Shown in pieces: positions 17,458-51,700 of a stretch of 64,000 bases of DNA; the stretch's first letter is position 1, and every line of letters starts with the position of its first letter. This DNA comes from Sphyrna mokarran. Lineage: Eukaryota. The stretch spans positions 96,844,001 to 96,908,000 of the forward strand of contig JAGIQG010000009.1 in NCBI GenBank assembly GCA_024679065.1, in the 5' to 3' direction. The notes under the pieces were generated by a model that had not been told where the DNA came from, did no database searches, and was given only the letters and a program-made list of their open reading frames with translations. Made by a program: the position numbers and the translations under genes.

Positions 17458-19547
17458 ATCTTCACGAAATCTTGGCAAGCAAAATAACCCCACCTTCCCC
17501 AACTTTACTTTGCAACTGATGTTTGCATACTTGGAAACATTCATGTGTCTACTATGCGATCTCGGCAACCTTCACATCCATCCTAAATTGAGGCGCCCAA
17601 AACCATAGGAGTTGAGGCCAGAGTACAGTTTATATAGGTTTATTGTCGCTTCTCGCTTTTACTTTCAATATTCCAGTTTCTAAAGACCAGTGATTCGTCA
17701 ATTATCGTTTTATAATGACCGAGACTAAGATCAAATTAAGATGCAGATTTATTTTTAATTAGGTGAATTTAAATGCCAGTAATGCGGTGGAGCATTAGCC
17801 TGGGCGCATTGCTAGCCCGGTAACATTGCCACTAGCACCTCCCGACACCCACACCAATTATACATAGACGTTCAGAGAATTATAAAATGATTCCGGAGAT
17901 ATGAGTAATCCCTAAGAGATAAGAGATTGATATTTTGAATAAGAATGCGGTCTGCCCTCTGATGCTGAATGCCTGTAATTCTTTGCAGAAGCCTCTCTAC
18001 TTTGCCTCGTTTAGCCTTCTTTAAGACATTTCTAGAAATCTATGTCTTTGATCCACCTTATGTTCGCCTATCCTGGCCTCCAGTTCTGCGACTCGAATTC
18101 TATTTCGTATTGCTGTTATGAAGTATATTGAGACGTTTTACCAATATTTGCACTACACAAGTGCCAGGCAAAGGCTATGATGCACTTAAATACCTGATAT
18201 TAAAATTCAACAGCGTTACAACATCTGAATTCCAAACATCCAACCTCAAGGGGTCACCATTGACCAGAACCTGAACTGGGCCAGTCATCTCAGTGCTGTG
18301 GTTGGAAGATCAGATCGGAGGCTGGGATTCTGGGCGAGTAACCCACCGCCTATGTCCCCAGCTCTGTCCCCTACCTACAAGACACCAATTAGAACTGTGA
18401 TTATAGATTCGTAATTCTCCTAAAGTATAGAACAGGCCATTCGGCCCATTGAACCAATTCCCAGGTCCTCTCCCCGTCCTATCCTCATAAGCCGACACAT
18501 TTCCTATGGTTAATCCACCTAGTCTAAACGTCCTGGGATACTAAGAGACAATATTCATGGACAATCCACCTGCACATCTTTGGATTGTAGGAGGAAACCG
18601 GAGCATCCAAAGGGTCCGAAGGAATCCTACGCAGGCACGGAGGGAATTTACAAACTCCACACAGTTAGCCAAGGCTGGAATTGAACCCGAGTTCCTGGAG
18701 CGGAGGCAGCAGTGCTAACTATTACAACAACCATTGTCCAGGGAGAGGGCACTTTCAGCACTCAATTAAATTGACACCGTCCAGAACAAAGCCACTAGCT
18801 TGATTGGCATCCCCACCACTAACCTTTACATTCGCTTCCTTTAACACCACTACAAAATGTCATAGCATGTGTCATCGACAACATGAAATCATCAAAGCTT
18901 CTTCGTCAGCTCATTCCAAACCTGCGATCAGTAACACCGACAAGAGCATGGACAGCCGACATAGGGGAACGACCCAATCAGTACGTTCTCCTCAAAACCC
19001 TACACAATCCTTCCAACTATATCTGACACTCACTTAGAATCCTGGAAACCCCCGTTTTAACAGTACAGTGGGATTCCGACACCACACGACCTTAGCTGGT
19101 TCCCGATGGTAACTGCCGACACCTTGTCACGGGCAATTTGGAAGGAGCAATGCTCTCCGGCCATGTCAGATACGGCACCAATTCATGAAATAATACACGT
19201 GAAACAAATGCGCTATTTAAATGCACGTCATTGTTGCCACTATTGTGATATGAAATTATCTCCCAATAAGACTGGGTTTACATAATGGATTTCCGCCACT
19301 GGTTAAAGGATTAACGGGGTTTATTTTGTGAAACTTCTGGCGGTTTTTACTCTGAAGCACTTGATTCGCATGTGGGGTTGCGCTTAAATCGTAATATCGA
19401 GACAGGGAATATATTTTTCGCCTCGATTTCATTAACTGTAAGTGTACGTACCACACCGTTTAAATCGGTCTCAATCACCGCACCGACGAGGTCTATCACG
19501 TCTAAAAACAAAGGGATACAATTCTAAAACGAGCAAAAGGTAGGTTG

Positions 19548-19597: not shown

Positions 19598-22500
19598 CTG
19601 TAGGTCAAACAATTACATAACTTTAACAGGCAGTTTGTAACATTCGCTGCGTACAATGTCTAATAGTACACCATATAGTTTGGTTGCAGCGTATACCTTA
19701 TCGATAAGACAAAAAAAAGTGCATTTTATATTTCATAACAACATTTGACAGTACAATAATAAAATACACTTTAATATGAAGAACCTTTATTTTTCCCTCA
19801 TTACTATAGGGATAGGTGTTGGCTATGCGTTTAATGCGTTTTAATAGATTGTGGCAAAACCCTTATCTGCTTCACGCACGTCCTTCAGGGAAATCTGCCA
19901 TCCTTCTCTTGTCTGACAGCCTCAGAAACCTTCCAGCCTTTCAGCAATGTTTTTACTTTAATTATTTCGTGGGGCATCGCTGATAATGTCAACATTTGTT
20001 GCCCCCTATTAATTGCCCTGAATTGCCATTTCAGTGGGCAGTTAAGAGTCGAGCACTTTACTATGGCTCTGGAATCACACGTAGGCCAGATCAGATAAGG
20101 ACGGCAGATTTCTTTCCCTGTAGGACATCGGTGAGCCAGTTGGGGTTTTCCAGCGGCTATAGTTGCAAGATCGCCTCCAGATTGACTTTTCACACGCGGT
20201 TAATCCGTGACTTTTTTTCTAAAGTGGTACAGCAAACATCTCAATTGTTTGAAAGGCAATCCATATGGGCAATAAATATTGGCCTTGTCAGTGATGCCAG
20301 TATGGAATCATAGAATCACAGAATCCCCTACAGTGCAGAAAGGAGCTATTCAGCCCATCGAGTCTGCACCGACCATAATATCCACCCAGACCCTATTCCC
20401 ATAACCGCATGTAATTACCCTAACTAGTCTCCCTGGCACTAAGGGGCAACTTAGCATTGCCAAACCACCTAACCCGCATATCTTTGGAGTGTAGGAGAAA
20501 AAAGGAGAATGTCATTTTTTAAAGCACTAACCAGACTACAAGAAATTCGAAAGGCGAATATGGCCAATACTATCTGCCAAGGGTAAAACGAAAAATCCTT
20601 ACCGAGCTGGTCAATTTCGGAGTAGAACTCACTGAACAACAAAGGAAAGAGATTAGAGTGAGATTGGTTCGAAACATGTGGGACACCTCCGCTGAACACG
20701 AAGGTAAAAAGTGATATCTTGGTATATTTCTACTCACCATTGAGGAGGCGGGGGTAAGTCTGTGAAGATACAAACAATAAATAAAGAGACCATAAGTATG
20801 TAACAAAATTGCATTTAGCCATGTCTGAGTTTGAACATTAGCTATAATCAATGATAAGTATTCATCGGGAGGGCACTGAGAATTAGAGAAGGTCTTGTCT
20901 GCAGCTATTACATTGTCCCTTCATTATAGCAACAGCTTCTATACCACTGCAGGCAACGCACTGAATCTATCTTGTATCCACATCTGAAGGTGCAATGTTT
21001 TACTTTCAATCCAGGATAGAATGAGCGGAAGGTGGTGCTCAGCACAACAGAGCTCCATTCAACTGAACACGTGTAGTTGATCCGACAAATCAAAACAATA
21101 AAATAATCCTATGTTGCAGTGATTCTGGTGGAACTGTAGCGTTGTTGAAGTATAGATAACATGATTCTCCTACTAGCCGTCATTCCAATTCAATAGTAAT
21201 CTCAGTCAGAGATTTGATTAAGGGTCATCCCGACTCCAAACATTTGTTCTATTCACTCCCCAGAGATGCTGCCAGATCTGTTGAGCATCTTCGGTGCTTT
21301 GCTTTCATATTATTGTAGGAATCTAAGTGTCCTTGTTGCCAATACCATCGATAATTTTAACGTGCAGCTTGGAAAACCACGCGAGCGGATGGAGCGCCAG
21401 TTCTTTGCTAAGCGCAATCATAATTTCCGTTGAGTTCTAGAGAGAATAAAATCGCGCAAAACAAGCGGTGTTTCCTCAAGGGCGGAGCAGGTGAGTCCCA
21501 GTATGGGAACAGTGGGTTGGGGTGGCATACCGGGACGAGGAGGTGGCGGACAATGCATTAGCAAACAGGCAATTACACAAGCTACTCTCGAGGTACTTAG
21601 CCAGTTCTATGTTCTATGTTCTATAAACCACAATTCTTACGGAACGTTAGCCTTTGGAAAAATTGCATAAATCTTGAAACTCACCATCCAGGTTGGTTTC
21701 GTCATACACTGCCTCATCCCTTGGTGATAAAAAAAGAGATCAATGTCACTATATTTTTACTCAACTATAGATTAATGCTTAAAAAAAGTGACAAACGAAA
21801 TCAAATCTGAGATTCACCAACCATTCCGAAGGCGGGTCAAATTCTGCAAGAATAATGAATAATGATGAAAAGTTAATATAATCCATCTAAAGATACTTTG
21901 AATAAAAGAAATTGTTGCCATGGCGGGTGGGGTCATGATTATAGAACTTAGATTTACATTGATAAAAATACCCGGGGGAAATTTATATTTTTCAATGAAG
22001 GGGTTAGTTATGCGCTATAGGAAATCGTGTTGCAAATAAATTATCGCTCAGATAGTTGGATTAATATTCAGTTCAGAAGAATGAGATGTGATCTTATTGC
22101 AACACCTGAGATCCTGAGAAGACTTGGAGGTTGGATACTGGAAGGATGTTTCTCCCTTGTGGCAAATCTAGAACTAGGGGATATAGTTTACGAACAAGAG
22201 GTCTCTTATCTAAGGCTTAGATTAGGGTCATTTTTGTTCTCTCAGGCAGTCGTTAGTCTGTGAAATTCTCTTCCGCAATGGAGGCTGAGTCATTGAGCTA
22301 AGCTACGGCTGAGTTGAATAGTTATTTAATAAACAAGAGTTGGGGGAGGTACGTGCTGGAAAAGACATTGCAAAGTAATGCTGACACACAACCAGATTAG
22401 CTTCGATCTTACTGAATGGCGGAGCAGGCTACAAGAGCTGATTGGCCCCCTCCTGATCCCAACTCTTCCATTCCTGAAATTAACTCCGATTTCCAGGCAC

Positions 22501-25500
22501 ACATGTTGTTACGTTTGATCAATGGATGATCATTTTGGACTGCAATTCAGACTGATTTTACTTTTCACCTTCTCAAAATAGACTGACATTATCTTATATT
22601 TATATTCGGTGGCAGGGTGGCACAATGGTTCGCACTGCTGCCTCACAGCGCCAGGGACCAGGAGTCAGTTTTGGCCTCAGGTCACTGTGTTTGCACGTAC
22701 TCTCCATGTCTGCCTGGGTTTCCTCTGAGTGGTCTGGTTTGCTCCCAAACTCCAAAGCTGTGTGGGTTTGACTGATTGGCTAAGCTAAATTACAACTTAT
22801 TGTCAGGAAAATTAGTAGGATAAATGTGTGGGGCTACAAGCATAAGGCCTGGTTGGGATTGTCATCAATACAGATGCAATACGCCAAGTGGCCTCATTCT
22901 TCACTGTTGAGATTCTATGATTCATTATACAATGTCTCACCAGATGCTTGGATTGGCGGGTACAGAGGAGCAGTGCCAGGCAATACAACAGGACATAGAT
23001 AGGTTGGTAGACTGGGCAGATATATGGCAAATGGAATTTAATCCGGATAAATGCGAGGTGATGCATTTTGGCCGGAAAAATGTAGAAGAAAGTTATAGGA
23101 TAAAAGGTAAAATTATTCGAAGTATAGAGGCGCAGAGAGACTTGAGGGTGCAGGTTCGCAAGTCTCTGAAGGTGTCTTCACAGGTGATTAAGGTGATAAA
23201 GAAAGCGTATAGTATGTTAGCTTTCATTGAAAAGGGTATCGAATACAAGAGTAGGAGTTTGATGTTGCAATTGTATAGAACGTTGGTTAGGCCTCATTTG
23301 GAATACTGCGTCCAGTTCTGGTCGCCGTACTATCGGAAGGATGTGGAGTCCTTGGAGAGAGTGCAGAGGAGGTTTACCAGGATGCTGCCTGGTATGGAAG
23401 GACTGTCTTATGAGGAACGATTAAATAGACTGGGGTTGTTTTCCCTTGAAAGACGTCGGCTTAGAGGGGATCTAATAGAGGTGTATAAGATTATAAGGGG
23501 TATAGATAGAGTGAATGGTGGTAAACTTTTTCCACCTTCAGAAATGGATAGGACGAGGGGTCACGGCCTTAGGGTGAGGGGGGCTATGTATAAGACGAAT
23601 ATTAGAGGGCAGTTTTTCACACAAAGGGTAGTGGGGGTGTGGAATGCACTGCCGAGTAAGGTGGTGGGAGCAGGCACGCTAGGGCTGTTTAAGGGTCTCT
23701 TGGACAGCCACATGAGCGTTATGCAGATAGAGGGATATAGTAGGACTGTTTAACTATGGCTTTTTTTTCCACAGGTAATTCGGTCCATACTTGACCATCA
23801 AGGAGCATGCATTCGGCAGGTGGTGCGAGGACAGCTCTTGGATGTTGATTCATGGGTTGCCTGGTGCTTCATGTCGTAAATGAGTGCTTTATCTGGACCA
23901 TCTGAAGGGCACCATGACAGCTCAGTGACTATCGCTGTAGCTGTGCAGACACTTGGAATTGGGCCGGTGTCTGCGGGAGTTTGTGCGTTCTCCCCGTGGT
24001 TGCGTGGGTTTTCTCCGGGCGCTCCGGTTTCCTCCCACATCCCAAAAATTCGCTCTTAGGCTGATTGGGAAACAAATTGTCCCTACAGTGAGACTCTTCC
24101 ATATTAGGAATAACCTAAAATTAGGATAGGATAATGGAATTGTTACTATATAGTTATGACGGCGGCGCGGGCTCGTTGGGCCGAAGGGCCTGTTTCCCGT
24201 GCTGTGTTGCTCCAAAAAAAATAAAAGAAACTTGTTTGGCATATGTCACGGATCACTCATGGCATTGCACTGATGCAAAAGACAGTATAGCGCATGTACT
24301 CCTAGTCCTGCTGAGAAGAAGGTTCAGTACTATGAATGTGCTTTATTTACCAGGTAGGTTAATTTCATCATAGTTGGAGACATCACTATCCACACAGGGT
24401 CTGCCAAAGATAAAACAAAATTGCATATATATAAAACAAAAGTGCAGAACTATTTTTTTTAAAGTCTCATTACTGCCATAACCACAAACTAACCTTTGTA
24501 CGTCCGTGTCTAATTCTGTGGGAAAAAAAGTCAAAAACTAAGATTTATCATTTAATGCAAACATGCCAAGCACTTTTGATATTGTGAAGAGATGTTACAA
24601 TCACATGAACCTTCTAAATGCAATAATAGTTAGAAAATATAATGAACTATTTTCCTAATGAGAAATATCATTCTGAATGCCTGAATGATGATTCAGTAAT
24701 CGGACTGTTAAAGAGATTGACTCACTATTACATACTCACCATGCAAATTGACAACATCGCAAGGCGCAAAATTGCTTTAGATTCAATGGAAAACAATAAT
24801 GTCACTAAATTGAACATTGGAAAGCATATCATTTTTTTTAATAAAGAAAATATGAGATTTGTCTTCAATGTTCACTGACCGTTGTAATGCTGAAGGATCC
24901 GGTGCTGTTGAAATCAAAGGCAAAAGAGAACAGCTATCATTAACTTTCCTTCTTACAGCCTTCCAAGCACAATCCACCTAAAACGGGATATTAGTTTCAA
25001 CTAAGCTTTACCACTACCGTTTATTTAATCAATTATAGAATCATAGAATCCCTACAGTGCAGAAGAAGACCGTTCAACCCTTCTACCATCCTATCCCTGT
25101 AACCCCACATATTTATCCTGCAATCCCCCTAACCGAGGGGCAATTTAGCATTGCCAGTCAACCTAACCGGCACATGTTTGGAGTGTGGCGGGGGAAATCA
25201 GAACACACAGAGGAAACCAATGCAGACACGGGGAGGATGTGCAAACTCCACACAGACAGTGACCCAAGTTAGGAATAGAATCTGGATCACTGGCATTGTG
25301 AGACAGCAGTGCTAACCACTGTGCCACCACACCACCCCCAACTGATTCAATTTCTTTTTATGTCCGTTTGCTGAATATTAAAACATGTAGTGTAGAATTT
25401 AATGTATCTCACTCAACAAAGTCAGGAAATAGTGCATTGCAGATCACAAAATATAAATATTACAATCTAAAAGTTAATGTTTAAAACAGATAAGGAGGAA

Positions 25501-28500
25501 CACCGGTCACACTATGGGACTATCTGAATGGTTGGGATTCTTGTTTAATGATAAGCACGGTAAGACCATCCGTAATAAAGTAGAAACCCCTGTATCATGC
25601 TGACTCCCTAACTATTCACTGGCTAATTTCAGCTAGACTATTTAATAGTCCGTTACTGAAGCGTGTTTCTTGCAGCAAAATATTACAAATTGAACAAGTC
25701 ACTTACCAGCGTGAGGAATATCTTCATAAATCCGTTCATTGTTTCTGAGTCACAAACAGATTTTTTTTAAAAGAATCCATATTATCTTGAAGTACAAAAT
25801 GCAATATATGGCAATTTCTGAAAAAAAATGAGGCAGGGGAGAGGTGGGGGGTGGAGGGGAGATTGACTAACCTCTGAATCTGTGAAGCACGAGCTGTTGG
25901 TATAAAAATTGAAGAGGGGAGTGAGAATTCACACATGCCCTTATTTATGTACTGATTTTATTTGTATTTTAAGTCTATTCGTGTCATAAATAGGTTTACT
26001 GCAAGAAAGTTACTGTGAAAATCCCCAAGTTGCCACACACTGGCACCAGTTCGGGTACACTGAGAGATAATTTAGCATGGCCAACGCAGCTAACTTCCTT
26101 TTGCACTGTGGGAGGCCCGGAGGAAACCCACATAGCCATGGGGAGAATGTGCAGATTCCACACAGACAGTTATCCAAGCTGGGAATCAAACCCGGGTCCC
26201 TGGCACTGTGAGGTAGCACTGCTAACCACTGCTCCACTGTGCCGTCCATAGTGCGTGCATGCATTTAACGGGTAGACAAGAAAGCGGAGTTATGTCCCTT
26301 AATACCTTTTCTCACACAATAATATGCAGACAACAGAATAAAAACACCCAATCCTCCAGCACCGATACACACGAGTATGTAGAATTTCGGCAATTCGCTG
26401 GACTTCTCTGTATTGAGTTCTTCCGTAGCTTTGCCTAAAGGGAAAAAAAAGAAGAATTTGTCATCCCTGATCCTGATTTCCTATTTCACTCTCCACAGTG
26501 CCCCAGGACTAGCATCCACACTTTGACTTACATTCTCAATGGCCAGAGAGAACAACACTTACAGTCATAGGTCACGGCCAACTAATCGCTCGTGTGTCCA
26601 AATTCATTACCAAAACATTCGATAAGTTTCAACGCGTAATCTGTTCTATATTGTGCTATAAGAGAGGAATTGGCTTTATATGTATCAGATGCATGCATAT
26701 CTGTCAATATAGGCTAGATATTCGGAGACAGGCAAAGGGCAGCATAATGAGCGGTTACCAGATTACATGCAATTGAATCACAGATTGCTTACTGTACTGC
26801 AGGAGGCCGTGTCTGTGCTGGCTCTCCGAAGGGGTGTTTTGGCCTAGTCATTCTCTGGCCATTCCCATTTGCCGTGCACATTCTTCCTTCTCAGGTAAGA
26901 AATTCAATTCCCTCTTGAATTCCCCCATTATATCCAACTCCAAAATAACCTCAGGGAGCACATTCCAACTCCTCTGCATCCACCCCCACCCCCCAAACAC
27001 ACACACACACACACACACACACAGTGCAAAAATAGTTATCTTCCTGTCTCGCTGCACTTGTACAGATTTGGGCTGAGAATAAATCTGGAGTATCATTTGC
27101 AGTGCTACTGTCCTTACGGAAAGAAGGATATACTGTCCATAGAGGCGGACAATATATCCTCAAATAAAGCTCACCAGACTAATTCCTGAGATGATGCGAA
27201 TGTTCCATGAGAATGAGGAGACTGAGCCTGTAATCTCCAGCGTTCGGAAGAGTAATAGTTGATCTCATTGCAGTGTATAATATTCTTGCAACGTTGGACA
27301 AAATAATTGCAGTAAGGGTATTTCCTCTGGCTGGAGGGGTGGAGGTTCAGGGGATGGTAGGTGGAGGAGGGTAGAAGATGGTTCTAGAGCCAGTGGGCAG
27401 TATGTCAGCATAAAGAGCAGACTGTTTAGGAGGGGGATGAGGAGGAATATATTTAATCAGAGGCTGGTGAATCTTAGGAAATTATTACTCCAGTTTAATT
27501 TTCCATAGAAACTATGGAATCTTTACAGCGCAGAAGGTCATCCCCATCTAGGCCCTTTCCCCGTCATCCCACATACTTGTCCCGCTAATCCTTCTCACTT
27601 ATGCATTCTAGGACACTAAGGGGCAATTTAGCATGGTCAATGCACATACTGGACACATCTTTGGACAGTAGGAGGTTAACTTCAGCACTTGAAGGAAAAG
27701 CTTTCAGACACGAGAAGAACATACAGACTCCGCACAGTAATCCCAGACTGGATTTAACCCAAGTTCCTGGATCTGTGAGGCTGCAGTGCTAACTACTGTG
27801 CCACCGTGCCATCCCAAATCTTCAAATACGTTCAAAAAATAGTTTGATACGTTTACGATTTCAAGCATTACAGAATCCTGAAATCACACAGTGCAGAAGA
27901 GGCAGTTGGCCCTTTGAGCCTATAAAGACACATTAGGAATATCTGACATGCCATTTGCCATGGCCTTGAACGTTACGACGTGTCAAATGCTCCCCAATGT
28001 CCTTTATGAAGGATTTAAGGCTACTCACATCTAGCATCATGCCAGTTACAGTATTCCAGACCATCATACTAGGTAAAATAAGCTTTTTCCTCACATTCCA
28101 GCCTACCCTTCACAATGGAATAATATGTTGTGAACGAGAACCCAGGGGTTCTTGAACTACCTGCCTGTTTCTCTTGGACTGCCTAGAGGCCACCCATTCA
28201 GTTCCTTTCTCAGGTTCCTTCAGCTGTGATGTGATCACCTCTCTACAGGTGCTGTCAGACGTGCGAATGCTTCAAACTGTCTCCGTGCACTATTCCAACT
28301 CTGAAAATCATGCTTCCAGGATCAAATGGTGATGGATAAAAACAACTGCAATAAATGACGAACTATGATTTCATTAAATGACAGACTTACTGGCCTACTG
28401 TCACATCTTCATTTCTATTTTTTCTAATTACCCTAAATCTGTACCTTTATTGTTTCAATTCTTCCACCAAGAGGAACATCCACGTCGCCCAGCACTTCTA

Positions 28501-39089: not shown

Positions 39090-39930
39090 AAGATGATACC
39101 AAAATTGATGGCATAGTGGACATTCAAAAATGTTATCTTCGATTGCAACAGGACCTTGATCAATTGGGCCAGTGGGCTGACGAATGGCAGATAGAGTTTA
39201 ATTTAGATAAATATGAGGTGATACATTTCAATGGATTGAACCAGGACAGGACTTACTCAGTTAATGATAGGGCATTAGAGAGAGTTACAGAACTAAGAGA
39301 TCTAGGGGTACGTGCTCATAGTTCCTTGAAATTGGAGTCACGGGTGGTCAGAGTGGTGAAAAAGGCATTCAGCATGCTTGGTTTCATCGGCTGGAACATT
39401 GTTGAAATTGTACAAGACGTTGGTGAGGCCACGCTTGGAATATTGTGCACAGTTCTGGTCACCCTGTTATAGAAAAGATATTATTAAACTGGAAAGAGTG
39501 CAGAAAAGATTTACTAGGATGCTACCAGGACTTGTTGGTTTGAGTTATAAAGAGAGGTTGGATAGACTGGGACTTTTGCTCTGGAGCATAGAAGGCTGAG
39601 GGGTGATCTTATAAAGGTCTATAAAATAATGAGGGGAGTCTAAAGCTGGAGGGCATAGGATTAAGGTGAGAGGGGAGAGATACAGAAGTATCCAAAGGGA
39701 CATCTTTTTCACATACAGGGTGGTACAAGCTGCCAGAAATAATAGAAGAGGCGGGTAAAATTTTGTCTTTTAAGGAGCATTTTAGACAGTCATATGGGTA
39801 TGATGGGTATAGAGGGATATGGGCCAAATGTGGGCAACTGGGACTAGCTTTGGAGTTTAAAAAAAAGAGTGACTTGGACAAGTTGTTTCGAAAGGTCTGT
39901 TTCCATGCTGTAAACCTTTAGGATTCTAGG
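39090..39930 (+). mobile_element. CR1 3' fragment
   Basis: LQQDLDQLGQWADEWQ, YKTLVRPRLEYC. Confidence 0.88.
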
Positions 39931-41607
39931 ACTCTCTGAGTCATGTCTTGTCTCTTCACCAGATTGACATCTCACATCTTTGGTATGCTTTGTGCTTTGT
40001 CTTGGCTTAAACATTTTCAAATGCTTTGTTTTGGTTACAGTTTGTGCAATCGATTTCCAAAGACTTACGATCCTCTGACAGAGAAAAATAATCTCCTTAT
40101 CGCTGTGTTAAATGGCCAACATCTTATTTTTAAATAATGACTCCTAGTTCCAAATTCTTCCACAAGAGGAAACATCCTTTCCACATCCACTATGTCAATA
40201 TTCCTCAACCTTCCAATTAAGTGACCTCTTACTCTTCCAAACACTGGCAGATTCAAGTTCTTTCCACATAGGAGATCCCATTTATTCCAGATATTAACAT
40301 CGTAAACTTAGTTGTTTTCAAGTGTTTATATCCTTTCTTTAGTAAAGAGACCAATACTATACACAATATAATGGTCTCGCCATTGCTCTGTATATCTGAA
40401 GTATAATGTCCCTACCTACGCGTTCAATCACCCTCACAATAAATGATAACATTCTATTACTTTATCTAAATACTTGCTGTACCTGTATAATCATCTCCTG
40501 CTATTCGTGCATTGGGACACCCAGATCCCTCTGCATCTTAGAGCTCTGCAGTAAATCTTGCCTGAAGAAAAAGAAGCATCAGGCCATTCAGATGTTTGCA
40601 AAAATGAATTTAAAAAATGAACGGTGGTAAATACTGAGAAAATTCTTCTTGGGAAACATAGGACTGATCTCTCGAAATAAAGAATACGTTACTTATGGCA
40701 GTGAAAGCATTGAGAATCTTTAGGTTCTAATAAAAAAACACTAAAGACGTCCAATTGTTAAGGATATTCACAGCACTGCTAGGTAGACTGAAGTAGAAAG
40801 ATAGTGTGAAGCAATGGATTAGACATGGATCAGCAGAGTTGATTCACACCAAGTGTGGCTAACGCCTTTATTATTTCTTTCCTGACTTCTTAAAGGCGCT
40901 GTTATTTCACCCTCTGGAATCGCAAATGTTGCAGTTGAAATAAGTATAAACTTGCCGCGTAAAGTACAATTGTAGTAATCTTAAATCCAGGCAAATAACC
41001 ATACCAATAATTTACATACCAAAGCATTGCCCTAAAATGTTGCTGATAAGCAGGAGACACCGCACTGGTTAATTTGCCAATTCTTCTGGTAGATCACGAA
41101 CATACACCCTGTTATCTGTCCTAACCACTGTTTGCTGATGATAACTGTTCTCCCTCTGGACTTAATTCACCGATCAATAACAAATATTGTGCAACTGCTC
41201 TGGTTTATTTCCCATTATCTTGTGTTTGTAGACGGGAAATTACTGCATAGAAATGCACAGAAAAAATACACCATTTAACTTCCAGAGATAATTAGACATA
41301 GAAGATTACAATGGTGCAAAGTTCTCCAACAGGGATATGAATTGCAACCTCCATGAGAAAATGCATTGACATAGGGATAGAGTCACTGGATCCATGGCAA
41401 AATTGTATAAAATTGGATTAACTCAGCAGTATCACCTCAGAGAGAAACACGACAATCTTGTGACCTGTTGAAATCCTGCCATGATAGATGGTGAAATCTA
41501 CCTTCCACAAAGGTCTTGGATGGGACTTTCCACCTGTGCTTATCCCAAAACTGGAAAATTTCTCCTGCGTCTAATGGGCCTTTCCCCAGTAGCCCCCCCC
41601 CCAAAAA

Positions 41608-41646
<39 letters not shown>

Positions 41647-44600
41647 CCCCCCCCACCCCACCCCCCACCCCCCACTGCCTGCTATTACTCCTGTGGTGAG
41701 CGGAAAGAGAAATTTCTACTGGCAATTAAAAAAAAACTACTTATGAGTGTGAAACCATTTTCTTTCAAACCCAAGCCGGTTCAATAATGCCCTTCAGGGA
41801 CTCTGGGTTTTAGCTGGTCTGGCCTACTTAATACTCAGCCTAAAGGCAATTAGAGATGGGTATTAAATTATAGTGATGCCCACATCCAATATGTCACTTG
41901 TGTTCTGTAAACTACAAGCCCCTTCAAATAGCATATGTTTCTAAAAGCATAATACTGTGGATGTTAGAATCCAAATTTTTCCTCCCACATACCAAAAATG
42001 TGCTCTTAGGCTGATTGGGTAACAAATTGTCCCTATATGGGAATCTTCAACAATAGGCATAGCCTAAAGTCAAGAATATGTCATTAAGACGTTAGGACGG
42101 CGGCGTGGGCTCGTTGGGCCGAAGGGCCTGTTTCCCGTGCTGTGTTGCTCTTTGTTCTTTGTTCTTTGTAAATAAGAATAGCTCTGAAGTAGGGTCAGAC
42201 AGATCTGAAATATTGGCTCTATTCTCTCTCCACAGATGCTGTTTGACCTGCTGAGATTTTCCAGCATTTCCTGGTTTTGTTGTAGCACCTTCTTGTGCTT
42301 AATAGAATGCTTACATTTGGCTGAAAAGAGGGATCTATATCATGCTCTTAGTTGGAATGGTAATATGGAGACCCTTGTAAACTCTAAGGAGATTAGGTTT
42401 TACAACTCATCAGGCACCTCTGATAATGCTGCACTATATCAGCATTATGTTGACTTATCAACTTGGACTTTTGGTCTCAGAATCCACCTTCCCCCCAAAC
42501 TCTTCCCCCCTAGATTCCCAGGCGTGAGACTTACTAACTGAGCTAGTGTTGACCTAAGGCTTTCTCTCCGTCCGGCCAGCTGTACAGCAGTATTCAGTGA
42601 AATAGAACTTCCATCAGAGTAGATCTCCATTTGACATGTTAGGAAGTTCTCCCCGTGTGAGCACGGGTTTCGTCCAGGTGCTCCATTTTCTTCCCGCACT
42701 GCAAAGATCTGTAGGTTAGGTGGATTGGCCATGACAAATTGCCTCTTATTGTCCAAGAATGGGTAAGATCAGGTGGATTAGCCAGGGTAAATGCATGGGG
42801 TTATCAGGGTAGTGCGGGAGAGGAAGAAAAGATGCTCTTTAGTAATCTATCCAGACTCATGAACAGAATCCCTAGAACACTTATAACGCAGAAAGAGACC
42901 ATTCGGCCCATTGAGCCTACACCGACAACAATCCCACCCAGAGCTTATCCCTATAAATCCACATATTTGCTCTGCTAATCTCCCTGATACTAATTAGTCG
43001 AATGACTTCCTTTGGTATTGGAAAGATTCAGTGAAACTAGGCTTCTTTCCATTTTTTTTCACCCATTGTTCTCACACATCAACACAGCAACAAAAAACTG
43101 ACACGAATTCACAGAGAGATTGCCCAGGAAGAACACAGAGCGGGTGTTAAATTGGTATTATTGCAGTGACAATTCTATGCTACTCAGGCAGTGAAAACTT
43201 GCTTTGCATCTGACTGGTGCCTAATTCTCTATTAACATTAAGGATCCACGCTTAGCTGCCATGCACTGGCAGCGATTCATGTTGTTTATTTGCAAGTACA
43301 AGATTACTCATTAACATCACTCAACCTCGAACCCACAAACAGCCGGTCACTTGCATTGTGCGCTGTGAAAATGCCATCTCTCTGTGATTACATAATGGCC
43401 GACGCTGCAGCCTCGGTGTCTGGTTGTTCAAAAGCAACATACGGAATCTTACGGCTTTGCTCGGGTGAGACGGAAGATTCACGCCTGAGGCCAACTGAGA
43501 TTTCGGACTCTCGCCAGCGCCAATTACGAGGCGGGCGCGCTGGTGGACCTCCGACTAAGAAAAACAAATCTAATAATTGCAGACTTCCATTCATACATAT
43601 GACCCACGCTTCAGTCCAAATTAAAACTAGTTGGCGTCTAAGTATAAAGGATAAGTATAAAGATTTCGCCTCTTCCTCAAATATCTTCGATGGGAAGAGC
43701 TGGTGACACTTCGCAGTAGGAATGAGAGCGTTTTAGCCAGTTTAATTCCACTTTTATAACAACTACGGCGATTTCAGCCCTTGGCCAAGGGTTTGCACCT
43801 GATTTAAACTGAGTTTGTTATTTGGTCTGACCTTAAAAGAGGCCGAGGGTTTGTCAGCCCCCCTATACAACGGCTGACATGTCGCCACAGTTCAAATGCT
43901 GGGGATTTGTGCATAGCAAGGCTGCAGACACTGCAATCTGGTAGCTCATCAGATAGTGTTGCTGTGAAACTAATAACTGAATAGGAGTGTGGGAAGGAAC
44001 ACATTTATCCGGGTTGGTTTAGTGTTAGTTTGGCCTCAGCGATTCCATTGACCACCCCTTGCTGGCATTGAGAGTACAGCAGGCCAATCGATCCATCTAG
44101 CCCATGGTGGGGTTTCTGTACACAAGGCCCCTCTTCCCCACCTCCCTCATCCCATCGGGGCTTCTTTCTATCATCTTCTGCTTAGCCGCCCAGTAAATAC
44201 AGCCACCCTCCCTATTCCATACCCTCACCATCCTCTGGGTTAAAGAAATAATACTCCGAATAATACTGGCATTCTTATATTCATTGCCGTCTAAGTTTGC
44301 TTTCCCGGAAGAGAGAACGTTTAATGCACGTTGTCGCAATCAAACAGTTGCATTAACTGAAAAATGTCTATCAGAATGTATACCACCCACTCGGCCGCAG
44401 TCTCCCCACCCCTCCCCCTCCCCCCACATACACACGCACACGCAAAACCTCCAAGTGTTAGATTTTGTTAAGCAAAGGGATGCAGCAGCATCAAACTATT
44501 CATTAGTCTCCAACATTTCAATCATGGTTTAGCTCATAGAAATAGAAACCCTACAGTACAGAATGAGGCCATTCAACTCATTGAGTCTGCACCGACTACA

Positions 44601-48700: not shown

Positions 48701-51700
48701 ATTGGACCAAAGCATTAATTCTCTTCCTCTTTCCACAATGATGTCATTATTTTCAGTATTTACTTGAGGCAATAGTATTTCTCCCACTTTCAAACATGGT
48801 AGAAATCCTACAGTGCAGGGGAGGCTATTTGGCCTATCGAGTCTGCATCAATTCTCTGACAGAGCATCTTATCTAGGCCCTCACCCTTTAACCCTATACA
48901 TTTAACATGGCTAATGGACCTAATCTACACGCCTTTGGACACTAAGGGACAAGTTAACATGGTCAACCCACCTAACCTGCATACCTTTGGACTCTGGGTA
49001 GAAACTGGAGCACCTGAAAGTGACCTACAAAGGCAAGGGGAGAATTTCACATAGTTAGCCAAGGCTGGGCTCGAACCCAGGTCCCTGGTGCTGTGAGGCA
49101 GCAGTGCTAACCACTGTGCTACTATGCTGCCACTAAATTATATTAGGCTATCTTGGCAGTCTCCATAAAAATAATGGATAGAGGCAATAACGAACACATT
49201 ATTAAGGGAAACAAATGAAATCTAGTGGATTCCAAATCATAAGGCAATGGAAAAAGTGAATGGAGTAAAATATTGAATTGATTTATTTGCCATGCAGATC
49301 AATTTTATCATAGAATTCTTGCAGTGCCAAAGAAGTCCATTCAGCCCATCAAACCTGTGCCAACAATAATTCCATGAAGGCTCCAAACCCGTGACCCTAA
49401 TTATTTATCTTGCCAGTCCCCCTGACACTGAGTGGCAATTTAGTATGGCCAATCAACCTAACTCTCGCATCTTTGGATTGTGGAAGAAAACCAGAGCACT
49501 TGGAGGAAACCCATGCAGACTTGGGGAGAATGTGCAAATTCCACACAGACAGTGACCCAAGCTGGGAATTGAACCCAGGTCCCTGATGCTATGAGGCAGC
49601 AGTACTAACCACTGCATCGCCATGCCAAATGTAGCTTTAAAAAAGAAAAGCACAAGAAACAGGGAATTCTCATTAAATAGTTTATATCTTTTCAATACAA
49701 GTATGGATACCAAGCTGAAGTAGACGACAGACGACTGATTTTATTTCAGTGCTGTTCTCATTTGCAAAGATTGCAACAGGAGCAACCTGTAGTGGAAGGA
49801 GTGCATTACTCATGGTGACCATCTCACTCCCATGTTTAACTGTCCATACTCAGGCACCACAATGTTCTACACAGTATTTTCAAGTTGCATATGTAGGATT
49901 AAAAATGCAGTATTTGACAAATGTAAATAGTGAAAAGAAATGCTAAAGGAAAAGAAATAATGATATAGTGTTGTCTCTTTGAAAAAAGGAAGTGTCTTGA
50001 GTAGTGGATTTTAAAATTGCAGAGTGCAGGCTGCAGAAGCAGGTTTTTGCAACATTGTATCAAAGCCAAGGAGTCAATGTTCCAACCTAACCAAAACAGG
50101 CTTTTGAATTGGACCATTGGTTTTAAAGCCAGCATGCAGAGAAGCAGAACCAGTGAATTTAAATGTGAGCATTGTTGACAACTCAGATCACAGGAATATT
50201 GTGAGGTAATTCCGGATATATAACCCCAAACAAGGGAGGAGGGGTTAACTGTCAGAGTATGCATGCCACCTCTTGAGTCGGAAGAGAGATAGGTGAGGCT
50301 CTCATGTAAATCCTGCAGTTCCATATATATCTTCAGAAAATCATCGTTTAAAAAGACAGAAACCAACTCAAAAAGTGATCCAGACATGAACATCACCAGA
50401 GATCATACCTCCAAAATATACTTATTTGTATATTAAGAAGTCTCACAACACCAGATTACAATCCAATAGGTTTATTTGGAATCACAAGTTTTCAGAGCAC
50501 TGCTCCTTCATCAGATGAGCCTCCTGATCAACTTATCTGATGAAGGAGTAGTGGTCCAAAAGCTCTGATTCCAAATAAACCTGATGGACTTTTATCTAGT
50601 GTTGTGAGACTTTTTACTGTGCCCACCCCCAGTCTAATGCTGGCATCTCCACATCATTGTATACTAAATGAGAGTGACTGAATTTTGTAATGATTTATTT
50701 CATTATTCTTGAAGGAGTGTTGTAATATTTGAACATCATTCTAGTGGGAATTTTATTCAGTTTGTTAATTGTTTCAGTAAGGTTCTCAAAAGTTTAAAAA
50801 TAAAGACCTATTAATTGTTTCTGAAAGAGAGTCTCAGATCCTGTTTTAATTTACCAAAACCAATAATTTCCTTCTGCCTCACACATACTTGTACAAGATT
50901 ATGAAGTGTGCTATGTCCCTTTGGTTCTTCCAAAATCGAGCAGAACGAAAAGTCAGCTTCATGTCATAACAACAGCAATGATGGGGAGACCTGACATAGT
51001 CCCATAAATTCCCAGCCGTTTGACTGCCAAGCTTGTGTGTGTGTATGTGTGTGTGTTTATGTATGTGTGTGTTTGTGTGTGTGTGTGTTTATGTTTGTAT
51101 GTGTGTGTATATGTGTGTGTTTGTGTTTGTTTGTGTGTANNNNNNNNNNNNNNNNNNNNNNNNNNNNNNNNNNNNNNNNNNNNNNNNNNNNNNNNNNNNN
51201 NNNNNNNNNNNNNNNNNNNNNNNNNNNNNNNNNNNNNNNNNNNNNNNNNNNNNNNNNNNNNNNNNNNNNNNNNNNNNNNNNNNNNNTGCTTTTCAGTGAT
51301 GACTTCCATGTTGAAACATTAATTGACTTTCCCTCTCCCCAATAGCTACTTAATTAGTGCCCCTAACGTCATTCACGTTGGGGTGAAGGAGAGTGTCGCC
51401 ATTCAAGTGGAAGGAATAGAAAAAGATATCAATGTTAAAGTGTATCTAATCGATCTGATCACATCAAAAAAGTATTCGGACGAAATCGATTTTAAACTAA
51501 CGGCAGAGAATGGTTACCATCAAATTAACGACATAGTTGTAAGTACTACCACTGTGATGCATACCTTACAGTAAAGAGTGAATAAACTTGGCACTTCATT
51601 ACTTTAGTGCGATCTTTGTTGAGATGCATTGCAAAGTCTGAGAATGAAACTATCACCATGTTCTTTAGGCAATCATTTACTTGTTCTTTCCTTTTCTTGG

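Follow-up and report, generated by a model that had tools for sequence, protein, structure and literature searches.

An NKp30-like receptor gene of Sphyrna mokarran with a predicted cytoplasmic tail built from five two-microexon modules

Kinlein et al. reportedly described NKp30 (NCR3) in 2021 as the only natural-killer receptor with a traceable history across the jawed vertebrates, and the signalling of its early forms is therefore of interest. Here we analyse an NKp30-like receptor gene, and above all its predicted cytoplasmic tail, on the minus strand of a 64,000-nucleotide (nt) stretch of DNA from the shark Sphyrna mokarran (assembly GCA_024679065.1, contig JAGIQG010000009.1, positions 96,844,001 to 96,908,000), which at its full length we call the window and in which position 1 is the first letter. 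Mammalian NKp30 is described, in the accessible parts of PMC12272517, as pairing with CD3-zeta through transmembrane charge interactions, and the tail of the human receptor as varying by alternative use of exon 4, with alternative 3′ exons giving different tails. PECAM-1 (CD31), according to the available portion of PMC5664058, has eight cytoplasmic exons that are alternatively spliced, and loss of its exon 14 abolishes SHP-2 binding. For CEACAM3/4, a tail resembling an immunoreceptor tyrosine-based activation motif (ITAM) and encoded in four exons is recorded in the part of PMC7042247 at hand, and excerpts of PMC2413239 describe Xenopus FcR-like (XFL) receptors, the tails of which carry one to three motifs in exons separate from the transmembrane (TM) exon, one XFL cDNA without the TM region keeping the tail.

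In the window, the TM exon of the NKp30-like gene is followed by ten microexons that alternate between short and long and form five pairs, each of them frame-neutral as a unit. We consider it likely that these microexons encode the signalling tail of a shark member of the NCR3 (NKp30) family, which would use a long cytoplasmic tail of its own instead of a charged TM residue and an adaptor. The predicted exons from the leader to the last microexon, with the labels used below (S, short; L, long), are as follows:

32145-32101, minus strand: leader exon with start codon and signal peptide; the range is that of the tblastn match, and the GT donor lies about 2 bases further downstream
29585-29247, minus strand: single VJ-type V-set immunoglobulin (Ig) exon, 339 nt, phase 1 to 1, its J-like terminus reading G-x-G-T-x-L-x-V
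26434-26306, minus strand: stalk/TM exon, 129 nt, phase 1 to 1, last base G
25893-25872, minus strand: short microexon 1 (S1), 22 nt, phase 1 to 2, donor 4/5
25744-25707, minus strand: long microexon 1 (L1), 38 nt, phase 2 to 1, YEDI motif
24904-24880, minus strand: short microexon 2 (S2), 25 nt, phase 1 to 2
24774-24740, minus strand: long microexon 2 (L2), 35 nt, phase 2 to 1, no tyrosine, a cysteine codon in the tyrosine slot
24515-24494, minus strand: short microexon 3 (S3), 22 nt, phase 1 to 2, donor 4/5
24400-24351, minus strand: long microexon 3 (L3), 50 nt, phase 2 to 1, YDEI motif with serine at −2
21843-21822, minus strand: short microexon 4 (S4), 22 nt, phase 1 to 2, proline-rich, donor 3/5
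21719-21685, minus strand: long microexon 4 (L4), 35 nt, phase 2 to 1, YDET motif
20759-20738, minus strand: short microexon 5 (S5), 22 nt, phase 1 to 2, proline-rich
20631-20603, minus strand: long microexon 5 (L5), 29 nt, phase 2 to 1, YSEI motif, donor 4/5

This series of microexons had been proposed in a first-pass annotation of the same DNA, and its exon table for 27000-19400 was reproduced to the base, by direct reading and by script on the minus strand, with all lengths, phases, GT–AG sites and intron sizes confirmed. All ten microexons are bounded by an AG acceptor and a GT donor, and their donors match the consensus at 3 to 5 of 5 positions. The introns inside pairs 1 to 5 measure 127, 105, 93, 102 and 106 nt, and those between successive pairs 802, 224, 2507 and 925 nt, the TM exon being separated from pair 1 by 412 nt. 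Each pair sums to a multiple of three (60, 60, 72, 57 and 51 nt for pairs 1 to 5), and the last base is G in the TM exon and in all five long exons; the skipping of a pair would thus keep the frame and that of a single exon would shift it, as the first-pass annotation had stated. The model of TM exon plus microexons contains no stop codon at internal or junction codons. Four of the five long exons carry a tyrosine motif (YEDI, YDEI, YDET and YSEI in L1, L3, L4 and L5, none in L2), again in agreement with what had been claimed. Repeats occupy part of the intervening sequence: SINE-like (short interspersed element-like) repeats of one family lie on the minus strand at 26040-26270 and 18480-18740, inside introns of the NKp30-like gene, and repeat-like sequence makes up most of the 2507 nt that separate pair 3 from pair 4.

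The V domain supports the identity of the receptor. The open reading frame (ORF) around the V exon matched Pfam V-set with an E value of 2.3e-11, and comparison of the V exon with solved structures in the Protein Data Bank (PDB) placed the four distinct NCR3/NKp30 sequences as the top four matches (E 2.3e-17 to 1.4e-16), followed by antibody and T-cell receptor V domains at 4.6e-11 and weaker. A protein search with the V-exon ORF returned a single match, which came from a second shark, Heterodontus francisci, and was 65% identical (model P0001). The leader is identical at 12 of 15 positions to residues 1-15 of the H. francisci models P0001 and P0008 by tblastn, and the window TM exon is 47% identical to residues 130-172 of P0008. 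The hydrophobic stretch of the TM exon holds no charged residue; a charged TM arginine, which serves for pairing with CD3-zeta or FcR-gamma, is a mark of the activating mammalian form of NKp30 and not necessarily of the whole shark family. The attribution of the tail to an NKp30-like receptor made in the first-pass annotation is borne out by the four best PDB matches and by the closest annotated proteins, which are NCR3-like isoforms of H. francisci with the same tail.

Nine models of one H. francisci gene, spanning XP_067865360.1 to XP_067865369.1, were gathered from the V-exon search, from cluster mates and from a further search; the two 90%-identity clusters of these models held no further members. 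In RefSeq, X1-X4 and X6 (P0004, P0008, P0009, P0011 and P0012) are named 'natural cytotoxicity triggering receptor 3-like', the TM-less X5, X7 and X8 (P0001-P0003) 'signal-regulatory protein beta-2-like', and the ninth model, P0010 (XP_067865369.1, 171 amino acids), 'uncharacterized protein'. Alignment of the models revealed a leader, a V domain, a 43-residue TM block, five pairs of short and long segments, an acidic linker and one of three endings. The differences among the isoforms fall at junctions predicted from the window, which supports the exon model. The 43 residues absent from X5, X7 and X8 correspond exactly to the 129-nt TM exon; X3 is one residue short exactly at the S1|L1 junction, and X2 one residue short within two residues of the L1|S2 junction; X6 ends one residue past the fifth pair; and X1 and X4 diverge 16 residues after the fifth pair, the length encoded by a window exon at 19501-19452 that is described below. 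The one-residue junction variants have no visible counterpart among the acceptors of the window. P0010 begins with a methionine of the TM block and contains the tail in full, and would be a tail-only, adaptor-like product; the window TM exon has no methionine at the corresponding place.

We compared the tail of the window gene with that of H. francisci exon by exon, expressing significance as the number of shuffles out of 2000 that reached the observed score. L3, the best conserved segment, aligned collinearly with H. francisci tail positions 53-64 (2/2000) and L1 with positions 8-19 (4/2000), followed by L2 with positions 30-34 (46/2000), L4 with positions 75-85 (77/2000) and S2 with positions 22-28 (136/2000). 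S1 was also collinear, with positions 1-6, and not significant alone (914/2000). S3 gave no significant match by itself (1823/2000). The two proline-rich short exons each found the other proline-rich segment as their best match, S4 at positions 87-90 (1019/2000) and S5 at positions 68-71 (1220/2000), neither significantly, and the best match of L5 was the C-terminal tyrosine motif of H. francisci and not the collinear segment (516/2000). The second long segment of H. francisci likewise lacks a tyrosine, and its fifth long segment has histidine in the slot where the window L5 has tyrosine. On the basis of these alignments the pairs appear to correspond one to one between the two sharks, including the tyrosine-less pair 2. 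At 65% identity in the V domain and 47% in the TM exon, the two genes would be orthologues in different species or else paralogues; if they are orthologous, the one-to-one correspondence implies that the five-fold state predates the separation of the two sharks. A layout common to a second shark is, in turn, one that would be old and maintained.

Downstream of the fifth pair, the following exons were considered for the 3′ end:

19597-19548, minus strand: terminal exon of the first-pass annotation, 50 nt, ending in TAG, with a CAG acceptor and 60% pyrimidines
19501-19452, minus strand: likely next coding exon (T1), an acidic linker, 50 nt, phase 1 to 0, with a TAG acceptor, 80% pyrimidines and a donor of 4/5
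15709-15650, minus strand: likely terminal coding exon (T2), phase 0, ending in TAG, with a YASV motif

The segment 19597-19548, with which the first-pass annotation had closed the gene, has a usable acceptor and a stop codon; it showed no collinear homology, its best match lying elsewhere in the H. francisci tail (67/2000 shuffles), and it is probably not the main 3′ end. At best it could serve as an alternative short ending, comparable to the end of H. francisci X6. T1 encodes 16 full codons, as many as the H. francisci segment that precedes the point of divergence of X1 and X4, and is collinear with H. francisci tail positions 106-112, a match that is weak when taken alone (251/2000). T2 matches the last 18 residues of H. 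francisci X4 (0/2000 shuffles) and was also recovered by tblastn. T1 and T2 together fit better than 19597-19548 as the 3′ end, and they likely add a fifth tyrosine motif to the tail, which would then hold five tyrosine sites over twelve exons downstream of the TM exon. Between T1 and T2, a 28-nt stretch bounded by AG and GT (15846-15819, minus strand) has a good donor; it was tried as a further exon and rejected, its match to the H. francisci X1 ending not being significant (785/2000 shuffles).

The first-pass annotation had also expected that automated annotation would probably miss this architecture. For H. francisci this proved wrong: its RefSeq models carry the same TM exon, five collinear pairs and C-terminus, and since RefSeq holds this related gene, the architecture was not missed there. 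The expectation may hold for Scyliorhinus canicula and for the present genome. The S. canicula RefSeq model P0005 (XP_038671257.1, 469 amino acids) joins two neighbouring NKp30-like genes, stops 16 residues after its second TM part and matches no microexon; this protein probably lacks the true tail, and its end, known from the protein alone, would fit a model that ran into an intron. Protein searches for relatives returned no protein from the genome of the window itself. A phmmer search of 1.84 billion representatives with the tail-only H. francisci P0010 recovered its own cluster and two repeat proteins that we judged spurious, and the ESM Atlas gave no usable match for the tail. As far as the searched collections go, the tail is thus annotated in one species only. 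Annotators may take these cases as a caution: the tail is present in one RefSeq annotation, a further model terminates just past the TM exon, and the collections searched returned no protein for this locus.

Several features of the exons bear on the origin of the two-exon module. The phase pattern is the same in all five pairs, the introns within pairs are uniformly small, and four of the five short exons are 22 nt long. In L1, L3, L4 and L5 the tyrosine codon is seventh when counted from the 3′ end, and L2 has TGC (cysteine), one base from TAC, in that slot. Serial duplication of a two-exon module, as the first-pass annotation had suggested, is therefore plausible from the exons; each module runs from phase 1 to phase 1, like Ig-domain exons, and so tandem copies of it would leave the reading frame intact. 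The introns did not bear out the same proposal. When the five pair units were aligned with their introns in MAFFT, no convincing intron similarity was found, the conserved columns being mainly splice sites and the tyrosine region (mean column identity 59%). With intron homology undetectable, the duplications would have to be old.

The layout suggests how the receptor might work. Behind a leader, one VJ-type V exon and a stalk/TM exon, the predicted gene would continue with five two-microexon modules, an acidic linker exon and a last exon with the Y-A-S-V motif; within each module the short exon would provide a proline-rich or acidic spacer and the long exon an acidic Y-x-x-I/T site. All ten microexons would normally be included, as they are in the nine H. 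francisci models, and binding of a ligand would lead to tyrosine phosphorylation and to the docking of SH2-domain proteins, so that the receptor could signal without an adaptor. The immunoreceptor tyrosine-based inhibitory motif (ITIM) has the consensus [I/V/L/S]-x-Y-x-x-[I/V/L], which fits one of the five tyrosine sites, that of L3 with serine at −2; the other four have arginine, alanine, glutamate or aspartate at −2, or threonine at +3. An ITAM consists of two Y-x-x-[I/L] sites 6-12 residues apart, and no such spacing was found in the tail, where, by exon lengths, the tyrosines of pairs 3, 4 and 5 stand 19 and 17 residues from their neighbours (18 and 16 between) and the others farther. The acidic Y-[DE]-[DE]-I sites come close to the sequence that Src-family SH2 domains bind best, and the last site, Y-A-S-V, resembles the Csk-binding site of the adaptor PAG; both are leads only. 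The short exons were considered as SH3 ligands and rejected in that role, because they have no basic residue in register with the class I and II consensus.

A bolder version of the same idea would make the five pairs a repeated docking array, a built-in transmembrane adaptor of an ancient NKp30-type receptor with Src-family SH2 sites and a Csk-type last site. In the mammalian receptor this tail would have disappeared, with CD3-zeta taking over the signalling, and cell-type-specific skipping of pairs would tune the number of sites. We put this forward as a speculation and hold it to be rather doubtful.

Some observations weigh against reading the ten microexons as the signalling tail of this receptor, or against parts of that reading. 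Half of the microexons (S1, S3, S4, S5 and L5) have no significant match to H. francisci when taken alone, and two of these, S4 and S5, prefer the 'wrong' proline-rich segment. The exon boundaries of H. francisci are inferred from differences among its isoforms only and not from its DNA. On the transcript side, Gnomon isoforms would imply RNA support, and a search of sequencing runs for the stretch returned a single run, which held 5% of the sampled words and is not on record as RNA. One canonical ITIM among five tyrosine sites, and none with ITAM spacing, do not separate an activating from an inhibitory receptor. Finally, with intron homology undetectable, serial duplication rests on exon features only.

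Three other explanations have to be set against this reading. Ten GT–AG segments could have been selected by chance from the many possible ones, and the plain pattern is indeed plentiful: a scan of the window for AG, an exon of 20-27 nt, GT, an intron of 80-140 nt, AG, an exon of 27-52 nt and GT, in which the length classes had to be right and the frame open, gave 390 minus-strand and 263 plus-strand matches, so that the bare pattern alone proves nothing. Once a splice-quality filter was applied (3 or more of the 5 donor-consensus positions matched, and a pyrimidine content of 60% or higher ahead of both acceptors), the minus strand retained five pairs, exactly the five described here and all in the 5.3 kb that follow the TM exon, and the plus strand two. 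The thresholds were set after the five pairs had been seen, and the test is therefore somewhat lenient to them. Given the outcome of the filter on the minus strand, and the collinear alignment of several exons to an annotated protein of a second shark, we regard selection by chance as extremely improbable. The microexons could also be conserved relics that this species does not use, in which case the gene would be silent or would yield a short tail through read-through from the TM exon into the following intron. Such a state would agree with S. canicula P0005, which ends 16 residues after its TM part without matching a microexon, with the absence of proteins of this genome from the protein-search matches, and with the fact that no RNA run holding the stretch was found. 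Yet P0005 fuses two neighbouring genes and is for that reason a poor model, whereas the ten exons keep an open frame, good GT–AG sites and the right phases, which unused sequence would lose by decay, and the tyrosine-bearing segments are the most conserved. We therefore think it quite improbable that the exons are out of use.

The remaining explanation concerns how the pairs are used. Each pair might be an alternatively spliced cassette, so that skipping or inclusion of the five pairs would yield up to 32 tails with different phosphotyrosine codes, as the first-pass annotation had envisaged (2^5 combinations). The arithmetic allows it, since each pair is a multiple of three with phase-1 junctions at G and the frame survives the skipping of a pair; some donors are weaker, such as that of S4 at 3/5; and tails tuned by splicing exist in PECAM-1, where exon 14 loss removes SHP-2 binding (the accessible part of PMC5664058). 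The same frame symmetry would, however, be required by tandem duplication alone. In each of the nine H. francisci models all ten segments are present and no pair is skipped, although these models do record other variation, namely skipping of the TM exon, one-residue junction variants and three 3′ ends, and the 90%-identity clusters add no isoform to them. The combinatorial claim is thus unsupported and, in our estimate, unlikely, and a 32-state splicing code without support so far limits the interest of the locus in that respect. We retain the reading of the ten microexons as a signalling tail in which all of them would normally be included.

Other features of the window lie outside this argument. 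A second NKp30-like V exon (1143-826, in the region 826-1164 of the minus strand) is found downstream of the gene. It shares 68% identity with the first V domain of S. canicula P0005 and 45% with H. francisci P0001; the TM exon and tail of that gene would fall beyond the start of the window. Within intron 1 of the gene described here, about 70 nt past the leader exon (32031-32008, minus strand), an eight-residue peptide in the leader frame shares seven of its eight residues with the first short tail segment of H. francisci and so stands closer to it than the window's own S1 does (tblastn E 3.8). An in-frame acceptor and a DNA duplication were looked for at this place and neither was found, and we treat the peptide as chance or an unexplained relic. 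Long microsatellites of the (TG/CA)n type at about 30080-30630, 27000-27060 and 41560-41700 are the source of ORFs with His-Thr and Cys-Val repeats. Two overlapping ORFs on the plus strand at 39116-39599 resemble, in translation, what we take to be a fragment of a retroelement reverse transcriptase. Positions 51140-51286 hold 147 consecutive N.

Set beside the described systems, the locus shares with mammalian NKp30 a single VJ-type V domain, for which NKp30 is the best solved-structure match, and differs in having no TM charge and a long tail with five tyrosine sites over twelve exons. Its nearest relative is the NCR3-like gene of H. francisci, which has the same order of parts (leader, V domain, TM block, five pairs, acidic linker) and, in X4, a tyrosine-bearing C-terminus. 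The CEACAM3/4 and XFL receptors, as far as the available parts of their sources (PMC7042247 and PMC2413239) describe them, resemble it in tyrosine-motif tails that lie in several short exons apart from the TM exon, and the XFL cDNA without a TM region parallels H. francisci X5, X7 and X8; these receptors differ in having one to three motifs, no five-fold two-exon repeat and unrelated ectodomains. In PECAM-1, too, many short exons beyond the TM exon encode the tail, and the tyrosine motifs are distributed over different exons (the available portion of PMC5664058). Its ectodomain, in contrast, contains six Ig domains, and skipping of tail exons is documented for PECAM-1 and not for the window gene. 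To our knowledge, the PECAM-1 exons are not arranged as repeated two-exon modules. A tail of five two-microexon, jointly frame-neutral repeats was not found described in the full-text literature, in a search that did not reach the main shark NCR3 papers or their supplements, and we make no claim to priority. The gene of the window places ten microexons and two further exons after its TM exon, with the tyrosine motifs in separate exons, and so follows the pattern of a multi-exon tyrosine-motif tail. It is a member of the NKp30 family without the charge for pairing with an adaptor and with a self-contained tail made from a repeated, frame-neutral module of two microexons; this modular tail is real and conserved, and it represents a variation on the multi-exon tyrosine-motif tails already known from Ig-superfamily receptors.

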